This document shows, piece after piece, positions 6,889-59,324 of a stretch of DNA of 64,000 nucleotides. Each line of letters opens with the position of its first letter. The first letter of the stretch is position 1. This stretch comes from Octopus sinensis (lineage: Eukaryota). Both the position numbers and the translations under genes were made by a program. The DNA lies in assembly GCF_006345805.1 (NCBI RefSeq), contig NC_043024.1, forward strand, positions 15,376,001 to 15,440,000. The letters are read 5' to 3'. The notes beneath the pieces were generated by a model, which saw only the letters and a program-made list of their open reading frames with translations, had not been told where the DNA came from and ran no database searches.

Positions 6889-7011
6889 ATGGCTGATGTA
6901 GTTCATCCTGTCGTCATTGATAATGGATCACATACATGTAAAGTTGGTTTTGGAGGTGATCATGAACCAAGAATTGCCATTTCTTCAGATGCTGATTATC
7001 CCAGAGATCAG
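6889..7011 (+). CDS. Divergent actin-like gene 1, exon 1 (41 codons)
   Basis: MADVVHPVVIDNGSHTCKVGFGGDHEPRIAISSDADYPRDQ with phosphate-1 motif DNGS; donor CAG|GTACGT at the conserved phase-0 actin intron position 41/42. Confidence 0.9.
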
Positions 7012-7199
7012 GTACGTTGACTATATTTATATGTAACTTTAAATACTCACACACACACACACACACACACACATCATCATCATCATAATGATCCTTGTTT
7101 TTTAATGTCCACTTTTCCATGTTTGCATGGGCCAGGTGGAATTCTTCATGAAAGATATTCTATGCTGATACCTTTTATATCAGGCTATCTTTCGCCTTT

Positions 7200-7760
7200 T
7201 TCCAAATATCATACAGCGGCTGCCCAAATATGAACATAATTCTTGAAAATCACCCAAGATACCACTCCCAGTTGTAACTGCGAAGACCCTGAAGCCTACC
7301 CCCTTGACCAGACATGTACGATAAACACCGTCATATATGAGGCTGAAGTTAGAGCTATGATCCAAGATAAATCTGTCAAAAAAAGAATTACGTTGGTTTA
7401 TGTGAGGGTTAATTCAAGAGACAATTATGCAAACCACCTATTTTCTTTCTGGCACATCGATAAAAGCAATGCAAGTTCGCTAGCCATGTACGGAATTTGA
7501 GGAGCAGCTCCACACCACATACAATTAAGTAGAGAATTGTGGAGAAATTCAAGCCATACATTAATGGATCTAAGAAATGCAGCTTGTGCATAGCAGAAAA
7601 GTCTCGTATTCTTCTCAAATCCAGATCTGCTTAATTCCACACCTGGAATTTTGAGCAGGTCTAGACACAGACAGATTTCTTCTATCGAATTGGAAGGCAC
7701 CACTCACTTTGGATTGAGTTGTCTCACAGACTTTGACATATTTTCTGTTATTTTTTCTAA
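7200..7760 (+). mobile_element. PLE GIY-YIG endonuclease remnant in gene 1 intron
   Basis: CNCEDPEAYPLDQTC...VIYEAEV...NHLFSF...LN...CRH-like pattern, with stops. Confidence 0.7.
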
Positions 7761-9059
7761 AACAGTTGTAATTAATGAGATTTCTGCAATCAGGAGGATG
7801 GAGATGAGGATTTGGGTCCCTTAGTTTCATTTCTTTTTTCATGTTTTTTCCACATTTTTTTCCTTTATTTTAATACATATATAATGCATTAGCAGAACCT
7901 GGAAGATTGCTTTAAGATACATTGTGTATTTTATAAATATGCCTGTTCAAGTATCATAAAAGCATCAAAATATTAGGAGCTCTTTCGGTTGTTTATTAAA
8001 TTTATACCCACACACACACACACAAATAAGTGAATATTGTTGGATATGTTCCTAGTAGTACGCTGATGAAACATGTTCACTGCTTATGGCTACCTGATGT
8101 CATCAACAGTATTTACATAATTGTCGCTGGATCTACCTCAGAAATTCCCCAGTGTTCGTTGAGTATATAACAACAGATAGAGGTGGAAAATGGAATATAC
8201 AAGAAATTTTATTGCTCACAACCATCGTTTTGACCCATCCTACATCGATCTGTTGTGGGTGGAATACTGTACAACAGGTTGTGGCGTATCCCCTGGTATA
8301 GAAGCATCTCTCTAGGTTATGTTATAAGGGGTATCTCATTCAATAAACCCTGTTTTGCTCAGTTTCAATATAGTATGTTTGTAGTGACCATAGGTTTAAG
8401 TTGTTGGACACGAATGGCTTGGGACAAATTCCATTGTGATGTTATATATATATATATAAGGATAAGCACATTAAAAGGGATATGAAGCTGTGAAAACATC
8501 TATGACAGAACTCATCAAGTGCCATAACAAATGGGGCCACAATTCCTGCTGGCTTTTTGTGCTAAATATGTCTGTCAGTGGCTTTACTTTTGTTGATATG
8601 CCAGAAAGAAGATGGGTGGTTTACATAACATCTTTTGAAATTGTTTTCCCATAAACTAACATAATTGTTCTTTCCAGTTTGGTTATCTTGAAGAGATGCG
8701 GTAACTTCTACCTCATAATCAGCAGTGTTTATCATACATACCTAATGAAGTGGGCAAGCTTTAGGCTCTCAACAGTTACAACTGGAAGTGGGCTCTTGAT
8801 GATGCTTATGTGTAATAATGTTCTTCATATTGGGGCAGCAGCTTTGTAGGTGAAACACGTATGTCAGGGATTAGCAAATTGCATTGATACAGTGGGACAG
8901 GTGATGTGGGTGGAACACACAGTTCGGGGGCTAGCGGAGAGCAATGATACAGTGGGACAGGATTGGGGAGTGGGAGGTAAGCGTAGTGCATGAAGTGGAA
9001 ATGAAGAGAAGAAATGTAGAGATGTAGTTTAGTATGTTGTAGTAGGGTGTGTGAGATGT

Positions 9060-55410: not shown

Positions 55411-56952
55411 TATATATATATATACATACGTACATATATATGTATACATACATACATACATACATATATATATAGGGTTTAGTGAAATGTTTTTGAATAA
55501 CAAAGCTAATTTAAGAAATGGAGTTAAATGCAAGCAACTGTCCAACTGTTGGATGGTATGATGTATTTTCACATGGTGGTGCTGTATGTTATGATACATG
55601 ACCCGAATTTTCGTCTCCAAAGCCACTTTGTCCAATGTCACTTCATCCACTTATTTTGGTCCATTATCTTTTTGTTTAATGATTTTTTTGTCCAACGACT
55701 TTTTGTCCAATTTTAAATAAAATCTTTAGAAAACAAAGTGAACAACAAAATCAAATAATCATTGGAAATTTTATTTATAGGATTTGTATTTGGACAAAAA
55801 CATCATCGGACAAAAAGACGTCAGACGAAAAGATATGGACGAAAAGACACTGGACAAAGTGACGTCGGACAAAAAGATATAGCACCATTATGATATTGGT
55901 CCCAGACACCATGATGTTTACACGGGAGACACTGGCCCCTCTCTGATTGATTGTTAATTTTCAGGCTGAGGCAGTGGATCAATACATGTCAACAGTTATA
56001 CATATATATAAATGAAATAATTGAGATTCAGTTGAATTGGGTACTTAAGTTGAATCCCTAAGTCAGACCAGCCAAAAGTAAGGTGATAATATTTATGACT
56101 ACACCTAGCCACTAGCTGTCAATTCACTCTTGTCCTTTATTCAAAATGGACACATTCTTCAAGTCAGATTTAGAAGTTGATAAAGAGATAAATGAATTAG
56201 AAATGAATTACAACCCTTCCAACATTATGACCTCATTATGCTCCGTGCAATTCCTAGAAGTTGTAATCTATTCTTAGCTACAATAGTGACAACATGAATT
56301 TCTTCCATCTTCTTACTCTGTTAAAATATTCACGAAAAATTATATTAATGTGCCCTACATGTTAAAATTCCATTCATTTATTTGTACAGCTGAAGATGGC
56401 ATTACATTAAAATTGATGCACTGATTGCTTTGTTAAATTAAATGGAGCTGCTTGAAACAGTCGTACTGCATCACTTGATATCCTGTTGCATATTTTGATT
56501 ATATGTGTGTGTGTGTGTATCTTTTATCTTTTACTTGCTTCAGACATTAGACTGTGGCCATACTGGGGCAGGGCCTTGAAGGGTTGTAGTCAAACAAATC
56601 GACCCCAGTACTTAGTTTTTCCCAAGCCTGGTACCTATTCTGTCAAACTCTATTGTTGAACTACTAAGTTATGGAGATATAAACACACCAACATCGGTTT
56701 TCAAGCAGTGGCAGGGAACAAAGACAGGTATAATGATGCACACACACACACACACAACACACACACACACACACACTCACACACACACACACACACACAC
56801 ACACACACATCTTACCTTGATGTTAGCAAAGCCATGGAACACATTGTGAGAAGGAAGATGATCACATTCTTTGAAGAAAATATCTTGCTCACTAACATGC
56901 AGCATGGCTACCCTTTAATAAGGAGCTCCCTTACATAGTTAATCGCATATTT

Positions 56953-57178
56953 GAACTGGCAGAAACGTTAGCACGCCGGGCGAAATGCGTAGCCGTATTT
57001 CGTCTGCCGTTACGTTCAGGGTTCAAATTCCGCCGAGGTCAACTTTGCCTTTCATCCTTTCGCGGTCGATAAATTAAGTACCAGTTACGCACTGGAGTCG
57101 ATGTAATCGACTTAATCCATCTGTCTGTCCTTGTTTGTCCACTCTGTGTTTAGCCCCTTGTGGGTAGTAAAGAAATAT
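56953..57178 (+). mobile_element. SINE family B, present only in copy B
   Basis: Empty site CGCATATTAAAAATG at about 20820 in copy A. Confidence 0.85.
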
Positions 57179-58313
57179 ATTAAAAATGAATAATTAATCA
57201 ACAGCTCAACTGTTCAAATATCGATGTGATGTATCTCAACTTTGCCAAGGCCCTGACAAATGTCAATCATGGAATGATATGGTCACAAATTGTATGACCC
57301 TTGTATCACAGGGAAACTAGGGACATGGCTGCATTACAGAAAGTCATTGCAAAAGGATCCCTAGCCAGGGAACTGTATGGGGATCACTGCTGTTCAAAGA
57401 GGCTCTCCCACCCGTGCTCTCAGTCAGACAGTCTCACCAGCTCTGCTGATGATATCTGAGTATTACAAAGTCTCAAGGACTACAGAATGATAGGAACGTA
57501 ATATACAAATGGTCTGAAGAAAGCAACATAAAGTCTAATGCTGATAAATTGCAAGCATTTTGATATCACCCTACAGATTCCACTTGGAATGCACAGGAGC
57601 AGGGAGTATTGCAATCCCAAACTTAGAGTCAGTGCTTGACTTGGGAATCCACTTGAGTGGCAATGTGTCTTTCTGTGGGAATATTACTAAGGCACATATA
57701 CTTACACACATATACAGAAGTTACCATACACACACACACACACACACACTCACTTGCTCTCCCTTCAGACATTGCAGTTGGGCTGTTATGATGAAACATT
57801 CTCTAAAGTGCATCAAAAACAACAGAACACTATTTTTATTAAATTCTTTATTAAAGTTCAGATCACACAAAAATCAACATTTTACTCAAATTTTATGGTT
57901 ACATGGCAGTTTAGAACAACATTATCTTACCATTAATAACAAACTTATAATACTGAAAATAGGTTCCAGAGAGGAATATTGCTAACAAAATATGTTAGTA
58001 CTAATTAAATCCATTTGTTACCAGATTTCTTTTAAGATACAAAAATTATGAAGAATTTAGTCAAAATAACTTTGTCGTTATGAAACTGGCATTTCAAACA
58101 TACATTAACGCAAATATTTCATGGAAGATTTTAATTGAAATCACTTTAAAACAGGCAGCTTTTATCATATAATCAGGGTTTACTCTCAGGTGGGTTAGTA
58201 TTAAAAGGGTTAGTAGGATTTCATTAATATCTCTTATTAATTGTCATTGAAGGGCTGAAAGTTAAACATTCAGCTTCCAGCTCTGGCCTATCACATTGTG
58301 CCATATATACATA

Positions 58314-59324
58314 CTAAGGTCTCAAATTTTCCATTTTATGTATATGTTCCCTACAGACATGAGATGCGTCAGAATTTTTATATTCTCCTTTTGTAATCCA
58401 CAGATCATCAGTGGGAGGTCTACTAGCCAATCTAGAACCCCCAATCCATGGAGAGTATTCACGTTCTGGTAGAGCAATGATATTAACTTCTGTGTTAGGT
58501 GGTGCCAAGGCACTGATTTCCTTTTTCATACGCTCAACAAAACCTGGAAACATTGTTGAACCACCAGACAACACAATGTTGGCAAACAGATCTCTCCTAA
58601 TTTCCACATCACATTTCATGATTGAGTTATAAGTTATTTTATGAACACCATCAGAAGGGTTGAAAATAGCTTCTGGGACTCGAAATCGTTCATTGCCAAT
58701 AGTAATGATTTGTCCATCAGATTGTTCATGACTCTTTTCCAAATCTTTAGAAGACTTTGCTGCCTGCATTTCTTGTTCAAAGTCTAGAGCAACATAGCAG
58801 AGCTTCTCTTTGATGACATTTAACGTTCTTTTCTCTGACATTGAGTCACCATACATGTAGCCACGTTCAGTCAAGATATTTTTAAGGTTATCTCTCAAGG
58901 CAAGACCAGTAATATTCTGATGCTGGCAGAAAGTAGCTCCTTTTATAGTTGAAGCTCCATAAATAGGGACAACTTGGGTGATACCATGGCCTACATTCAC
59001 AGAAATACCTGTGACACGGCCAGAATCAAAGAGGGACAAAGCAGCTTGATTAGCCACCATTACTGCACGAACTTGAAACTTTTCAAACATAATTTCAACC
59101 ATATTCGCTCTGTTTGTTTCAGAGTTACTGACAGGCTCAGTCAACAAGACAGCATAGTCTTCGGCTGCAACGTTCAACTCGTCGAATGTATGTTGCCAGA
59201 TCCTCTCCATATTACCCCAGTCAGTAATAAGACCATGTTTAATGGGATTCTGCAAATTAAGGACAGTTTTATACTTTTCAGCTTTCCCTCCAACAAAGAA
59301 TTCGGGGTTTGGTCCAGAATTTTT
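58314..59324 (-). CDS. Divergent actin-like gene 2B, exon 2 (exon 1 expected beyond the window)
   Basis: Acceptor TTGCAG|AAA; intact 336-codon frame; 19 nucleotide differences from 2A counted by eye. Confidence 0.85.

Follow-up and report, generated by a model that had tools for sequence, protein, structure and literature searches.

A tandem array of divergent, fast-evolving actin-derived genes in Octopus sinensis

The 64,000-nucleotide stretch of the Octopus sinensis genome analysed here, hereafter the window (CM016886.1:15376001-15440000; assembly GCA_006345805.1), harbors the right-hand part of a cluster of divergent actin-like genes. The evidence favors, with a probability of about 0.75, an Octopus-restricted, tandemly amplified and selectively maintained family derived from actin, whose products combine a remodelled nucleotide cleft with filament surfaces unlike those of canonical actin, and which is expressed in skin or mucus at least. 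The complete array extends over 162 kb and comprises eight intact two-exon genes and one pseudogene. A first-pass annotation, made from the window sequence alone, had viewed approximately a third of this array and proposed a lineage-specific subfamily of fast-evolving actin paralogs with a possible germline role.

Elements in the window were detected by a six-frame listing of open reading frames (ORFs), tblastn searches with actin and with spliced models, and direct reading of the splice junctions. Coordinates are window positions unless a public record is named. Three long actin-like exon-2 ORFs were observed, at 10552-11532 (+), 21937-22968 (-) and 58314-59345 (-), while tblastn with actin furthermore recovered short exon-1 matches at 6889-7011 (+) and 28907-28794 (-) and a broken match at approximately 50022-49148 (-). 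The introns of genes A and B, read directly, have clean GT/AG borders. The elements are as follows:

6460..6888, + strand: gene A upstream region, with a putative promoter and short 5′ untranslated region; TATA-like TTTTTATAG about 35 bp before the ATG
6889..7011, + strand: gene A exon 1, codons 1-41, protein MADVVHPVVIDNGSHTCKVGFGGDHEPRIAISSDADYPRDQ; ATG at 6889, GTACGT donor directly following
7012..10545, + strand: gene A intron, 3534 bp, phase 0, at actin codons 41/42; AG acceptor before 10546
10546..11532, + strand: gene A exon 2, codons 42-369 and stop (11530-11532); encodes the peptide FQTPELLFQPGLIDK
28908..29304, - strand: gene B upstream region, homologous to that of gene A by alignment
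28794..28907, - strand: gene B exon 1, codons 1-38; ATG at 28907, GTATGT donor directly following
22948..28793, - strand: gene B intron, 5846 bp by junction reading, with a 3.1-kb minisatellite at 24664-27752
21937..22947, - strand: gene B exon 2, codons 39-374 and stop (21939-21937); six-residue deletion in the hydrophobic plug and a frameshift-extended C-terminus
58314..59324, - strand: gene C exon 2, 337 codons including the stop; part of XP_029652512.2
59325..64000, - strand: gene C intron, cut by the window end, with a 22-bp minisatellite at 61059-64000 (junction reading and self-comparison)
17380..27617, no strand: left copy of the B/C segmental duplication (self-BLAST)
49148..50022 (approximate), - strand: truncated pseudogene of D2/B type, sharing 88% nucleotide identity with paralog D2 of the wider array

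The spliced product of gene A (369 amino acids) is 100% identical to XP_036370416.1, a protein annotated as 'actin-3-like [Octopus sinensis]', and that of gene B (374 amino acids) is identical to XP_036370581.1. Full-length matches to the Pfam Actin domain (PF00022) were obtained for both (A and B; E 5.9e-100 and 3.5e-99). The two complete genes of the first-pass annotation were thus reproduced by tblastn and direct reading. Its third gene, described as a lone intact exon 2, is indeed intact in this exon but is not alone: as gene C exon 2 sits in a duplication of the B region, a first exon was predicted beyond the window, and this was found on the public contig at window-equivalent 65292-65179, approximately 1.2 kb past the window end. 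The right copy of the duplication occupies 54932-64000 and continues beyond the window, with the two copies sharing approximately 96% identity over more than 10 kb at an offset of approximately 36.4 kb (self-BLAST). The protein encoded by C exon 2 shares 95% amino acid identity with B, and 17 of the 19 nucleotide differences between their second exons (19/1011) are nonsynonymous.

All three window genes are already represented by RefSeq models under the automatic names "actin-like" and "actin-3-like", gene C corresponding to XP_029652512.2, and NCBI merges B (isoform X1) and C (isoform X3) into a single locus, LOC115225778. Isoform X2 of this locus (XP_029652591.2) joins C exon 1 (65179, window-equivalent) to B exon 2 (22947) across approximately 42 kb. 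This is also the entry behind the B/C accession in the mucus proteome discussed below, and the cross-gene splice is either real or a mapping artefact of the near-identical copies. No paper describing these genes as a family was retrieved by full-text searches using RefSeq, UniProt, LOC and OctVul identifiers, or by general octopus/actin/testis searches.

The pseudogene had also been recognised in the first pass, and its truncation, frameshifts and stops at approximately 50022-49148 were borne out. Missing from it are exon 1 and the initial ~115 codons of exon 2, its start lying at approximately actin codon 155, and it carries a 216-bp insertion at 49610-49825 as well as several in-frame stops and frameshifts, providing a local picture of unconstrained decay. 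The matching fragment is carried by O. vulgaris, where it is fused onto the model CAI9741790, indicating that the pseudogene was already present before the two species diverged.

To the left of the window, five further intact genes are located on CM016886.1:

15279537-15286473, - strand: D2
15301141-15308135, - strand: D1
15318609-15324737, - strand: F
15337032-15347212, + strand: E2
15354345-15363788, + strand: E1

These are followed by A (+), B (-), the pseudogene (-) and C (-), the last with its first exon just outside the window. No more actin matches were found up to 10 kb on either side of the array. A syntenic array is present in O. vulgaris, where it is covered by the consecutive models CAI9741784-794, and its E/A block contains four intact units as opposed to three in O. 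sinensis. One of the O. vulgaris units (L011 32768-37405; OX597840.1) is intact and chimeric, with an exon 1 that is protein-identical to that of A, an exon 2 sharing 96% identity with that of E2, and an intron of A size (3.5 kb). This unit is direct evidence of exon-level exchange between paralogs. Together with patchy identities among the copies, such as the D-loop of E2, which matches that of A, it indicates that gene conversion contributes to the structure of the array. In O. bimaculoides (CM046627.1), at least one E-like copy, one D1-like copy and one D2/B-like fragment could be identified. Duplicate copies of exon 1 are also observed upstream of D2 in O. sinensis (L004 29292-29414 and 31663-31785) and upstream of a B/C-type gene of O. 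vulgaris (L007 5001-5114 and 12938-13033), where the annotated intron is 19 kb long. These extra copies could serve as alternative first exons or be what is left of units since lost.

The descent of the family was determined from a neighbor-joining tree (200 bootstraps) incorporating human Arp1 and Arp2 (actin-related proteins, Arps; both 100% identical to Protein Data Bank, PDB, chains), turtle ACTRT2, further divergent actins of a lineage-specific kind, and conventional actins of animals, a fungus and an amoeba, with Arp2 as the outgroup. The Octopus proteins form one clade (bootstrap 100) from which Arp1, Arp2 and ACTRT2 are all excluded. Two subclades are evident, one comprising A, E, D1, F and the O. 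bimaculoides copies (bootstrap 100), and the other comprising D2, B and C (99). Pairwise identities follow the same pattern. A, B and C share 51-54% amino acid identity with mollusc actin and D2, the least diverged copy, shares 63%, while family members share 39-41% identity with Arp1, 33-39% with Arp2 and 39-43% with turtle ACTRT2. Among PDB entries, the 60 that match A and B best comprise conventional actins only (E ~1e-116). When a family profile was compared against 1.84 billion cluster representatives, the family itself scored 733 bits, followed by ordinary actins at approximately 490 bits. The sole scorers above ordinary actins outside the family were multi-domain fusions, and no other family stood between the Octopus clade and actin. 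In searches at 90% clustering only Octopus proteins scored above ordinary actins. A homolog search with D2 was swamped by ordinary actins and yielded no further information on cephalopods. The family is, as judged from these comparisons of sequence, an actin derivative lying outside Arp1 and Arp2.

Further support for descent from actin is found in the gene structure. In each of the 14 units examined, a phase-0 intron separates the residues that align with Q41 and G42, so that the retention of the actin intron at 41/42 noted in the first pass extends to every copy. This is the ancestral intron position shared by vertebrate and invertebrate actin genes. Conventional actins of animals share more than 85-90% identity among themselves, and A, B and C (51-55%) and D2 (63%) fall below this level of conservation. 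The remaining classes, Arp3 to Arp10, are more distant from actin than the Octopus proteins are, being less than ~40% identical to it. Family members were found in three Octopus species only, in protein databases that lack many cephalopod proteomes, and as far as these databases show the family appears to be restricted to Octopus. The first-pass proposal of a lineage-specific, fast-evolving subfamily (clade bootstrap 100, three Octopus species only, ratios of nonsynonymous to synonymous substitution rates, dN/dS, of ~0.8-1.0) is therefore upheld, and the outcome that it named as a refutation, proteins falling inside a known conserved Arp class, did not occur for Arp1, Arp2 or ACTRT2 (by tree and identities).

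The rate of protein change was estimated by the Nei-Gojobori method, with the following dN/dS values:

B vs C: 2.75 (20 nonsynonymous and 2 synonymous differences; not significantly above 1)
E1 vs E2: 0.99
A vs E1: 0.78
A vs B: 0.84 (dS 0.46)
D2 vs B: 0.61 (the sole comparison significantly below 1)
D1 vs the O. bimaculoides copy: 1.03
Orthologs of O. sinensis and O. vulgaris: 0.79 (A), 1.37 (E1), 1.70 (E2) and 1.00 (B)
Pooled: 0.76 (highest in residues 31-60, 1.27, and 358-375, 1.28)

The family average is ~0.8-1.0, whereas conventional actin is under strong purifying selection, with an expected dN/dS near zero. Values above 1 are not significant for B vs C, for the pooled D-loop window (1.27) or for the C-terminus, and positive selection is not claimed. 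Between O. sinensis and O. vulgaris, the coding sequence has diverged at least as much as the intron in three of four ortholog pairs, namely A (1.80% vs 1.46%), E2 (2.61% vs 1.28%) and B (2.93% vs 1.91%), with E1 showing the reverse (1.62% in the coding sequence, below 2.37% in the intron). Similarly, A and B share 68% identity in their coding sequences, which is no better than in their alignable flanks and intron pieces (66-77%).

Despite this rate of change, the reading frames have been kept. No nonsense changes were observed among ten intact coding sequences, against ~41 expected under neutrality (P ~1e-18; tree length of 0.835 substitutions/site), and the four ortholog pairs show no coding insertions or deletions, where the intron rate would predict 12.6 (P 3.5e-6). 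The splice donors and acceptors are furthermore intact in every copy. The absence of stops and of coding indels and the intact splice sites indicate that the copies are maintained as coding sequence, while most of their residues are free, or driven, to change. The exempted residues form a core: 100 of the 346 ungapped alignment columns are invariant among 14 intact members, where 70 would be expected under uniform rates.

The majority of the invariant columns (82/100) hold the same residue as actin, while the remaining 18 are derived changes fixed throughout the family:

V10I, A22G, R37Y, V76I, T126K, V152S, M153V, S155V and H161Q
Y169S, T201D, A204S, Y294F, T297I, T303S, Y306F, M325T and Q354D

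The derived traits that the first-pass annotation had noted in the window genes, namely the GFGGD motif (A22G), the loss of one residue in HTFYNEL and the altered xxLDSGDGVTH segment containing the second phosphate loop, are common to the whole subfamily. Taken with further changes in the cleft at G15 (to H or Y), D154 (to N, with D in two copies) and D157 (to H, with L in D2), the derived changes are concentrated in both phosphate loops and in the adenine pocket. In place of the canonical DNGSG(M/L)xK and DSGDGVTH, the phosphate loops read DNGS(H/Y)xCK and (N/D)VGHGITQ in all copies except D2, in which the second loop is NVGLGFSQ. Retained actin residues include D11, G13, S14, K18, Q137, G156, G158 and K213/E214. 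In the accepted mechanism of ATP hydrolysis by actin, the attacking water is positioned by Q137, H161 and D154, with G15 and D157 in contact with the phosphates and metal. As the water-positioning H161 and D154 are replaced while Q137 is kept, altered nucleotide handling is predicted, in which ATP hydrolysis is probably weak or absent. The second phosphate loop also contains a GHG motif in two unrelated divergent actins, one from the fungus Ambispora (P0323; NSGHGITH) and one from the amoeba Anaeramoeba (P0280; DIGHGITS), and D157H thus seems to recur independently among divergent actins.

The filament contacts are the least conserved parts of the proteins. The D-loop is rewritten, Y169 of the W-loop is replaced by Ser in every copy, and six residues of the hydrophobic plug are missing in B and C. 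At the 3′ ends of B and C (21937-21990 and 58314-58367), an insertion of 2 nt that is not present in D2 and A moves the last codons into another frame, such that the HRKCF end of actin is lost and a tail reading EHIHKMENL(S/R)P is gained, a change conserved in the O. vulgaris copies. D1 and F are shortened near the C-terminus. With such surfaces these proteins probably do not build ordinary F-actin (filamentous actin). The actin fold itself appears to be kept: AlphaFold2 models of A and B (pLDDT ~71; pTM 0.73) leave the D-loop region unresolved, and the top Foldseek matches of the A model are actin structures (TM ~0.8; probability 1.0).

Evidence of translation comes from a published proteome, obtained with tandem mass tags (TMT), of the skin mucus of male and female O. 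vulgaris (PMC11431876; PRIDE PXD052915). In the portion of its data considered here, the high-confidence peptide FQTPELLFQPGLIDK is assigned to A0A7E6FRT8 (gene A) and to A0A6P7TL86 (a D1+D2 model, LOC115225825), as well as to two O. vulgaris gene models and three paralarval transcriptome ORFs of 127, 412 and 422 amino acids (PMC11431876). Both A0A6P7TUT0 (LOC115225778, the B/C gene) and A0A6P7TL86 are listed as master proteins, and the filter applied in that study removed entries without a unique peptide (PMC11431876). A0A6P7TUT0 is reported at higher levels in senescent animals (ratios 0.44 and 0.42) and is approximately 4-fold higher in senescent females than in males (male/female 0.25, p 7e-7), while A0A6P7TL86 is higher in aquarium-kept, senescent and female samples (PMC11431876). 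No more family-specific tryptic peptides are present among the rows listed from its supplement (PMC11431876).

By in-silico digestion, A, B and C share no tryptic peptide of at least six residues with Octopus cytoplasmic actin, and the identified peptide FQTPELLFQPGLIDK occurs only in A-type and D1-type copies. Since entries were required to have a unique peptide and A, B and C have no tryptic peptide of this length in common with cytoplasmic actin, family members, of at least the A/D1 and B/C types, are translated and are present in a somatic barrier secretion of both sexes. The first-pass annotation had held that its proposal would fall if spliced expression were absent from every tissue, and expression is indicated by the mucus peptide, the protein entries and, as given in the same part of that source, the paralarval ORFs (PMC11431876). 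Exact-protein look-ups of A, B, C and other paralogs in an assembly collection including Logan returned NCBI genome records only, and the exon-2-only ORF of A returned nothing from this collection, providing no transcript contigs to support splicing.

Comparison with known actin-family systems places these genes among the rapidly evolving, lineage-specific duplicates of actin, in that a restricted range, a raised rate of protein change and retained reading frames were all found. The family resembles the cytoplasmic actin of Octopus (LOC115214121; A0A6P7SM13) in fold, in length (~370 amino acids) and in core residues including the SGGS motif, and A, B and C share 53-55% identity with it, conventional actins being the best match in every search. 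The phase-0 intron at codon 41/42 is likewise common to the family and to animal actin genes. The family differs from conventional actin in the deletion of Y91, the rewritten D-loop, the changed cleft, the altered C-terminus and, in B and C, the missing hydrophobic plug. It differs furthermore in its organization as a tandem array, with a copy number that varies between sister species, and in its dN/dS of ~0.8-1.0. Drosophila Arp53D and the obscura-group paralogs (such as Arp2D) are likewise lineage-restricted and fast-evolving, with altered D-loop or terminal regions (PMC7038667, PMC8291977). Unlike these, the Octopus genes were duplicated in tandem at the DNA level with retention of the parental intron, form an eight-gene array subject to gene conversion, are detected in skin mucus and show no statistically significant positive selection.

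The testis Arps of mammals and sauropsids (ACTRT1-3, ACTL7A/B, ACTL8 and ACTL9) are similarly diverged, at ~375-430 amino acids, and lie outside the Arp1-10 classes. They are not orthologous to the Octopus family, as judged from turtle ACTRT2 (P0260), the representative that was aligned: it falls outside the clade, shares 39-43% identity and, unlike the Octopus proteins, keeps the canonical DSGDGVT loop. Arp1 (centractin), a filament-forming relative of actin, lies at a similar distance from it, but is conserved across eukaryotes and equipped with canonical nucleotide loops, and the Octopus proteins are 39-41% identical to it. The sequence comparisons thus indicate that the family is of independent origin among lineage-specific actin-family duplicates, and is no member of the fly or mammal families.

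These observations are best explained by an origin from a conventional intron-containing actin gene, after which the array would have grown and been reshuffled through unequal crossing-over and gene conversion among paralogs. Selection keeps the reading frames, the splice sites and ~100 core residues, with the remainder changing at a roughly neutral rate, and change is fastest in the D-loop and the C-terminus. The actin fold would be kept, the nucleotide cleft remodelled and conserved within the family, and the filament contacts altered, so that the proteins are expected to have specialised roles in particular cells, either as actin-like subunits or by partnering or modulating actin itself.

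A germline specialisation, with expression mainly in testis or sperm and fast change arising from sexual selection or conflict as in Arp53D, Arp2D, ACTL7 and ACTRT, was the role that the first-pass annotation had thought possible. It draws on the predominantly male-germline expression of the fast-evolving, lineage-specific actin-family duplicates of flies and mammals (PMC7038667, PMC8291977), and on a single sex-biased Actin-domain gene in O. sinensis gonad RNA sequencing (RNA-seq) data, EVM0021683, which has the same sign as Dmrt1 and an identifier that is not mappable to the array. The expression tied to the family genes in the sources considered is, however, somatic only, comprising mucus of both sexes, a B/C male/female ratio of 0.25 (p 7e-7) and paralarval ORFs. 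No testis data were found for the array loci. The explanation is one by analogy, and given the somatic detection we regard it as unlikely. The same detection in a barrier secretion could point to actin mimics, made in skin epithelium and released into mucus, which would interact either with microbes themselves or with the factors by which these recognise or modify the actin of the host. The amino acid changes fall mainly on the protein surface, in the D-loop, at residue 148, in the region of residues 177-179 and at the C-terminus. This extension is speculative, and we would give it only about one chance in ten. Were it true, a host-microbe arms race rather than sexual selection would drive the amplification, the copy-number turnover and the amino acid change at or above the neutral rate, and the actin fold would have a somatic, defence-linked use.

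Other explanations carry less weight. Decaying duplicates without a function at the protein level, with ORFs left intact by chance or recency, would be expected to show a dN/dS of ~1 and coding divergence about equal to or above that of introns, as observed here, and a pseudogene does occur in the array. Such decay is nevertheless very improbable in the face of no stops against ~41 expected, no coding indels against 12.6 expected, splice sites that are all intact, intact orthologous copies in three species with a dS of up to 0.46 between subclades, 100/346 invariant columns against 70 expected, and the detection of family-specific peptides. The near-identity of B and C (~96% over more than 10 kb), which NCBI models as one gene with exon-mixing isoforms, might suggest a tandem-duplicated haplotig introduced during assembly. 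The independent O. vulgaris assembly, however, has several B/C-type units (CAI9741789, -790, -792 and -794), 36 kb of unique sequence, with the pseudogene in it, lies between the two copies, and their divergence of ~3-4%, with many indels, exceeds that between O. sinensis and O. vulgaris orthologs, making an artefact highly improbable. Finally, the distance of the family from actin (~52% identity) resembles that of Arp1 (54%), and could mean that what was read as novel belongs to Arp1 (centractin), Arp2 or another of the conserved Arp classes. The identities to Arp1 (39-41%) and Arp2 (33-39%) are, however, below those of actin itself to these Arps, the clade excludes both with a bootstrap of 100, the top 60 PDB matches are all actins, the actin 41/42 intron is retained and the tandem array includes the 63%-identical intermediate copy D2, leaving this reading next to no probability.

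Several points weigh against a selectively maintained and expressed Octopus family as outlined above. The proteomic support in the portion of the mucus data considered is thin, consisting of one peptide (two peptide-spectrum matches) common to A and D1 and of table entries for B/C and D1+D2. Mucus also holds ordinary cytosolic proteins, so that detection there does not fix the cell type of origin. Nucleotide binding, ATPase activity and polymerisation are deduced from residues only, and the AlphaFold2 models are of moderate confidence. The restriction to Octopus is based on protein databases without many cephalopod proteomes. An average dN/dS near 1 is also expected from relaxed constraint alone, and gene conversion blurs orthology and inflates some of the coding divergences.

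The region upstream of gene A still aligns with that of gene B (29304-28908; 66% identity), and its last ~130 bp are alignable in all paralogs and contain conserved blocks. It is regarded as a putative promoter. A stronger conservation of the upstream region than of the coding sequence was considered and rejected, given that the flanks, parts of the introns and the coding sequences of A and B all share ~66-77% identity across the locus. The upstream regions are as such homologous, with a constraint that the alignment does not make demonstrable.

Repeats also occur around and within the genes. A 22-bp minisatellite, AATCCTATAATATCCTATAATT, occurs in ~140 copies over ~3 kb in the introns of B (24664-27752) and C (61059-64000), and is responsible for the very low guanine-cytosine content and strong GC skew of these introns. 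Three copies of the unit are also found in the A intron at 9671-9734, indicating that the repeat predates the A/B split and expanded later. Downstream of A, at a distance of 1.2-3.2 kb, (GAGT)n and (CTCA)n tetranucleotide arrays lie in opposite orientation (12759-13165 and 13698-14779). Similar 'SLTH'-coding arrays follow D1 (L004 17865-19453), and the tetranucleotide arrays may form part of the duplication unit. A dispersed repeat of ~400 bp, which looks like a short interspersed nuclear element (SINE), is present in seven copies sharing 78-92% identity, in both orientations:

1755-2167, 19183-19587, 36382-36770, 38066-38451, 39398-39735, 48069-48418 and 54417-54802: copies of the ~400-bp repeat

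No tRNA and no Rfam family were found in the window, and the non-actin ORFs at 32275-34062, 40765-41682, 50524-50931 and 29893-30327 gave no Pfam match. Two of these, 32275-34062 (+, 595 amino acids) and 40765-41682 (+, 305 amino acids), contain reverse-transcriptase-like YxDD motifs (LYRDDALFI and SRYVDDINIV), with no Pfam match at E-values up to 0.01. From these motifs, they are probably degenerate or unclassified retroelements situated between the actin-like genes.

Actin is among the most conserved of proteins, and the fast-evolving copies found in flies and mammals have informed on the specialised cytoskeleton, almost all of it that of sperm. The Octopus array represents an independent and unusually large case, in which both the copy number and the combinations of exons differ between sister species. 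If the mucus evidence holds, rapid diversification of actin-like proteins would not be confined to the male germline. Furthermore, the family provides a set of natural variants for asking which residues of actin are needed for nucleotide handling and polymerisation.

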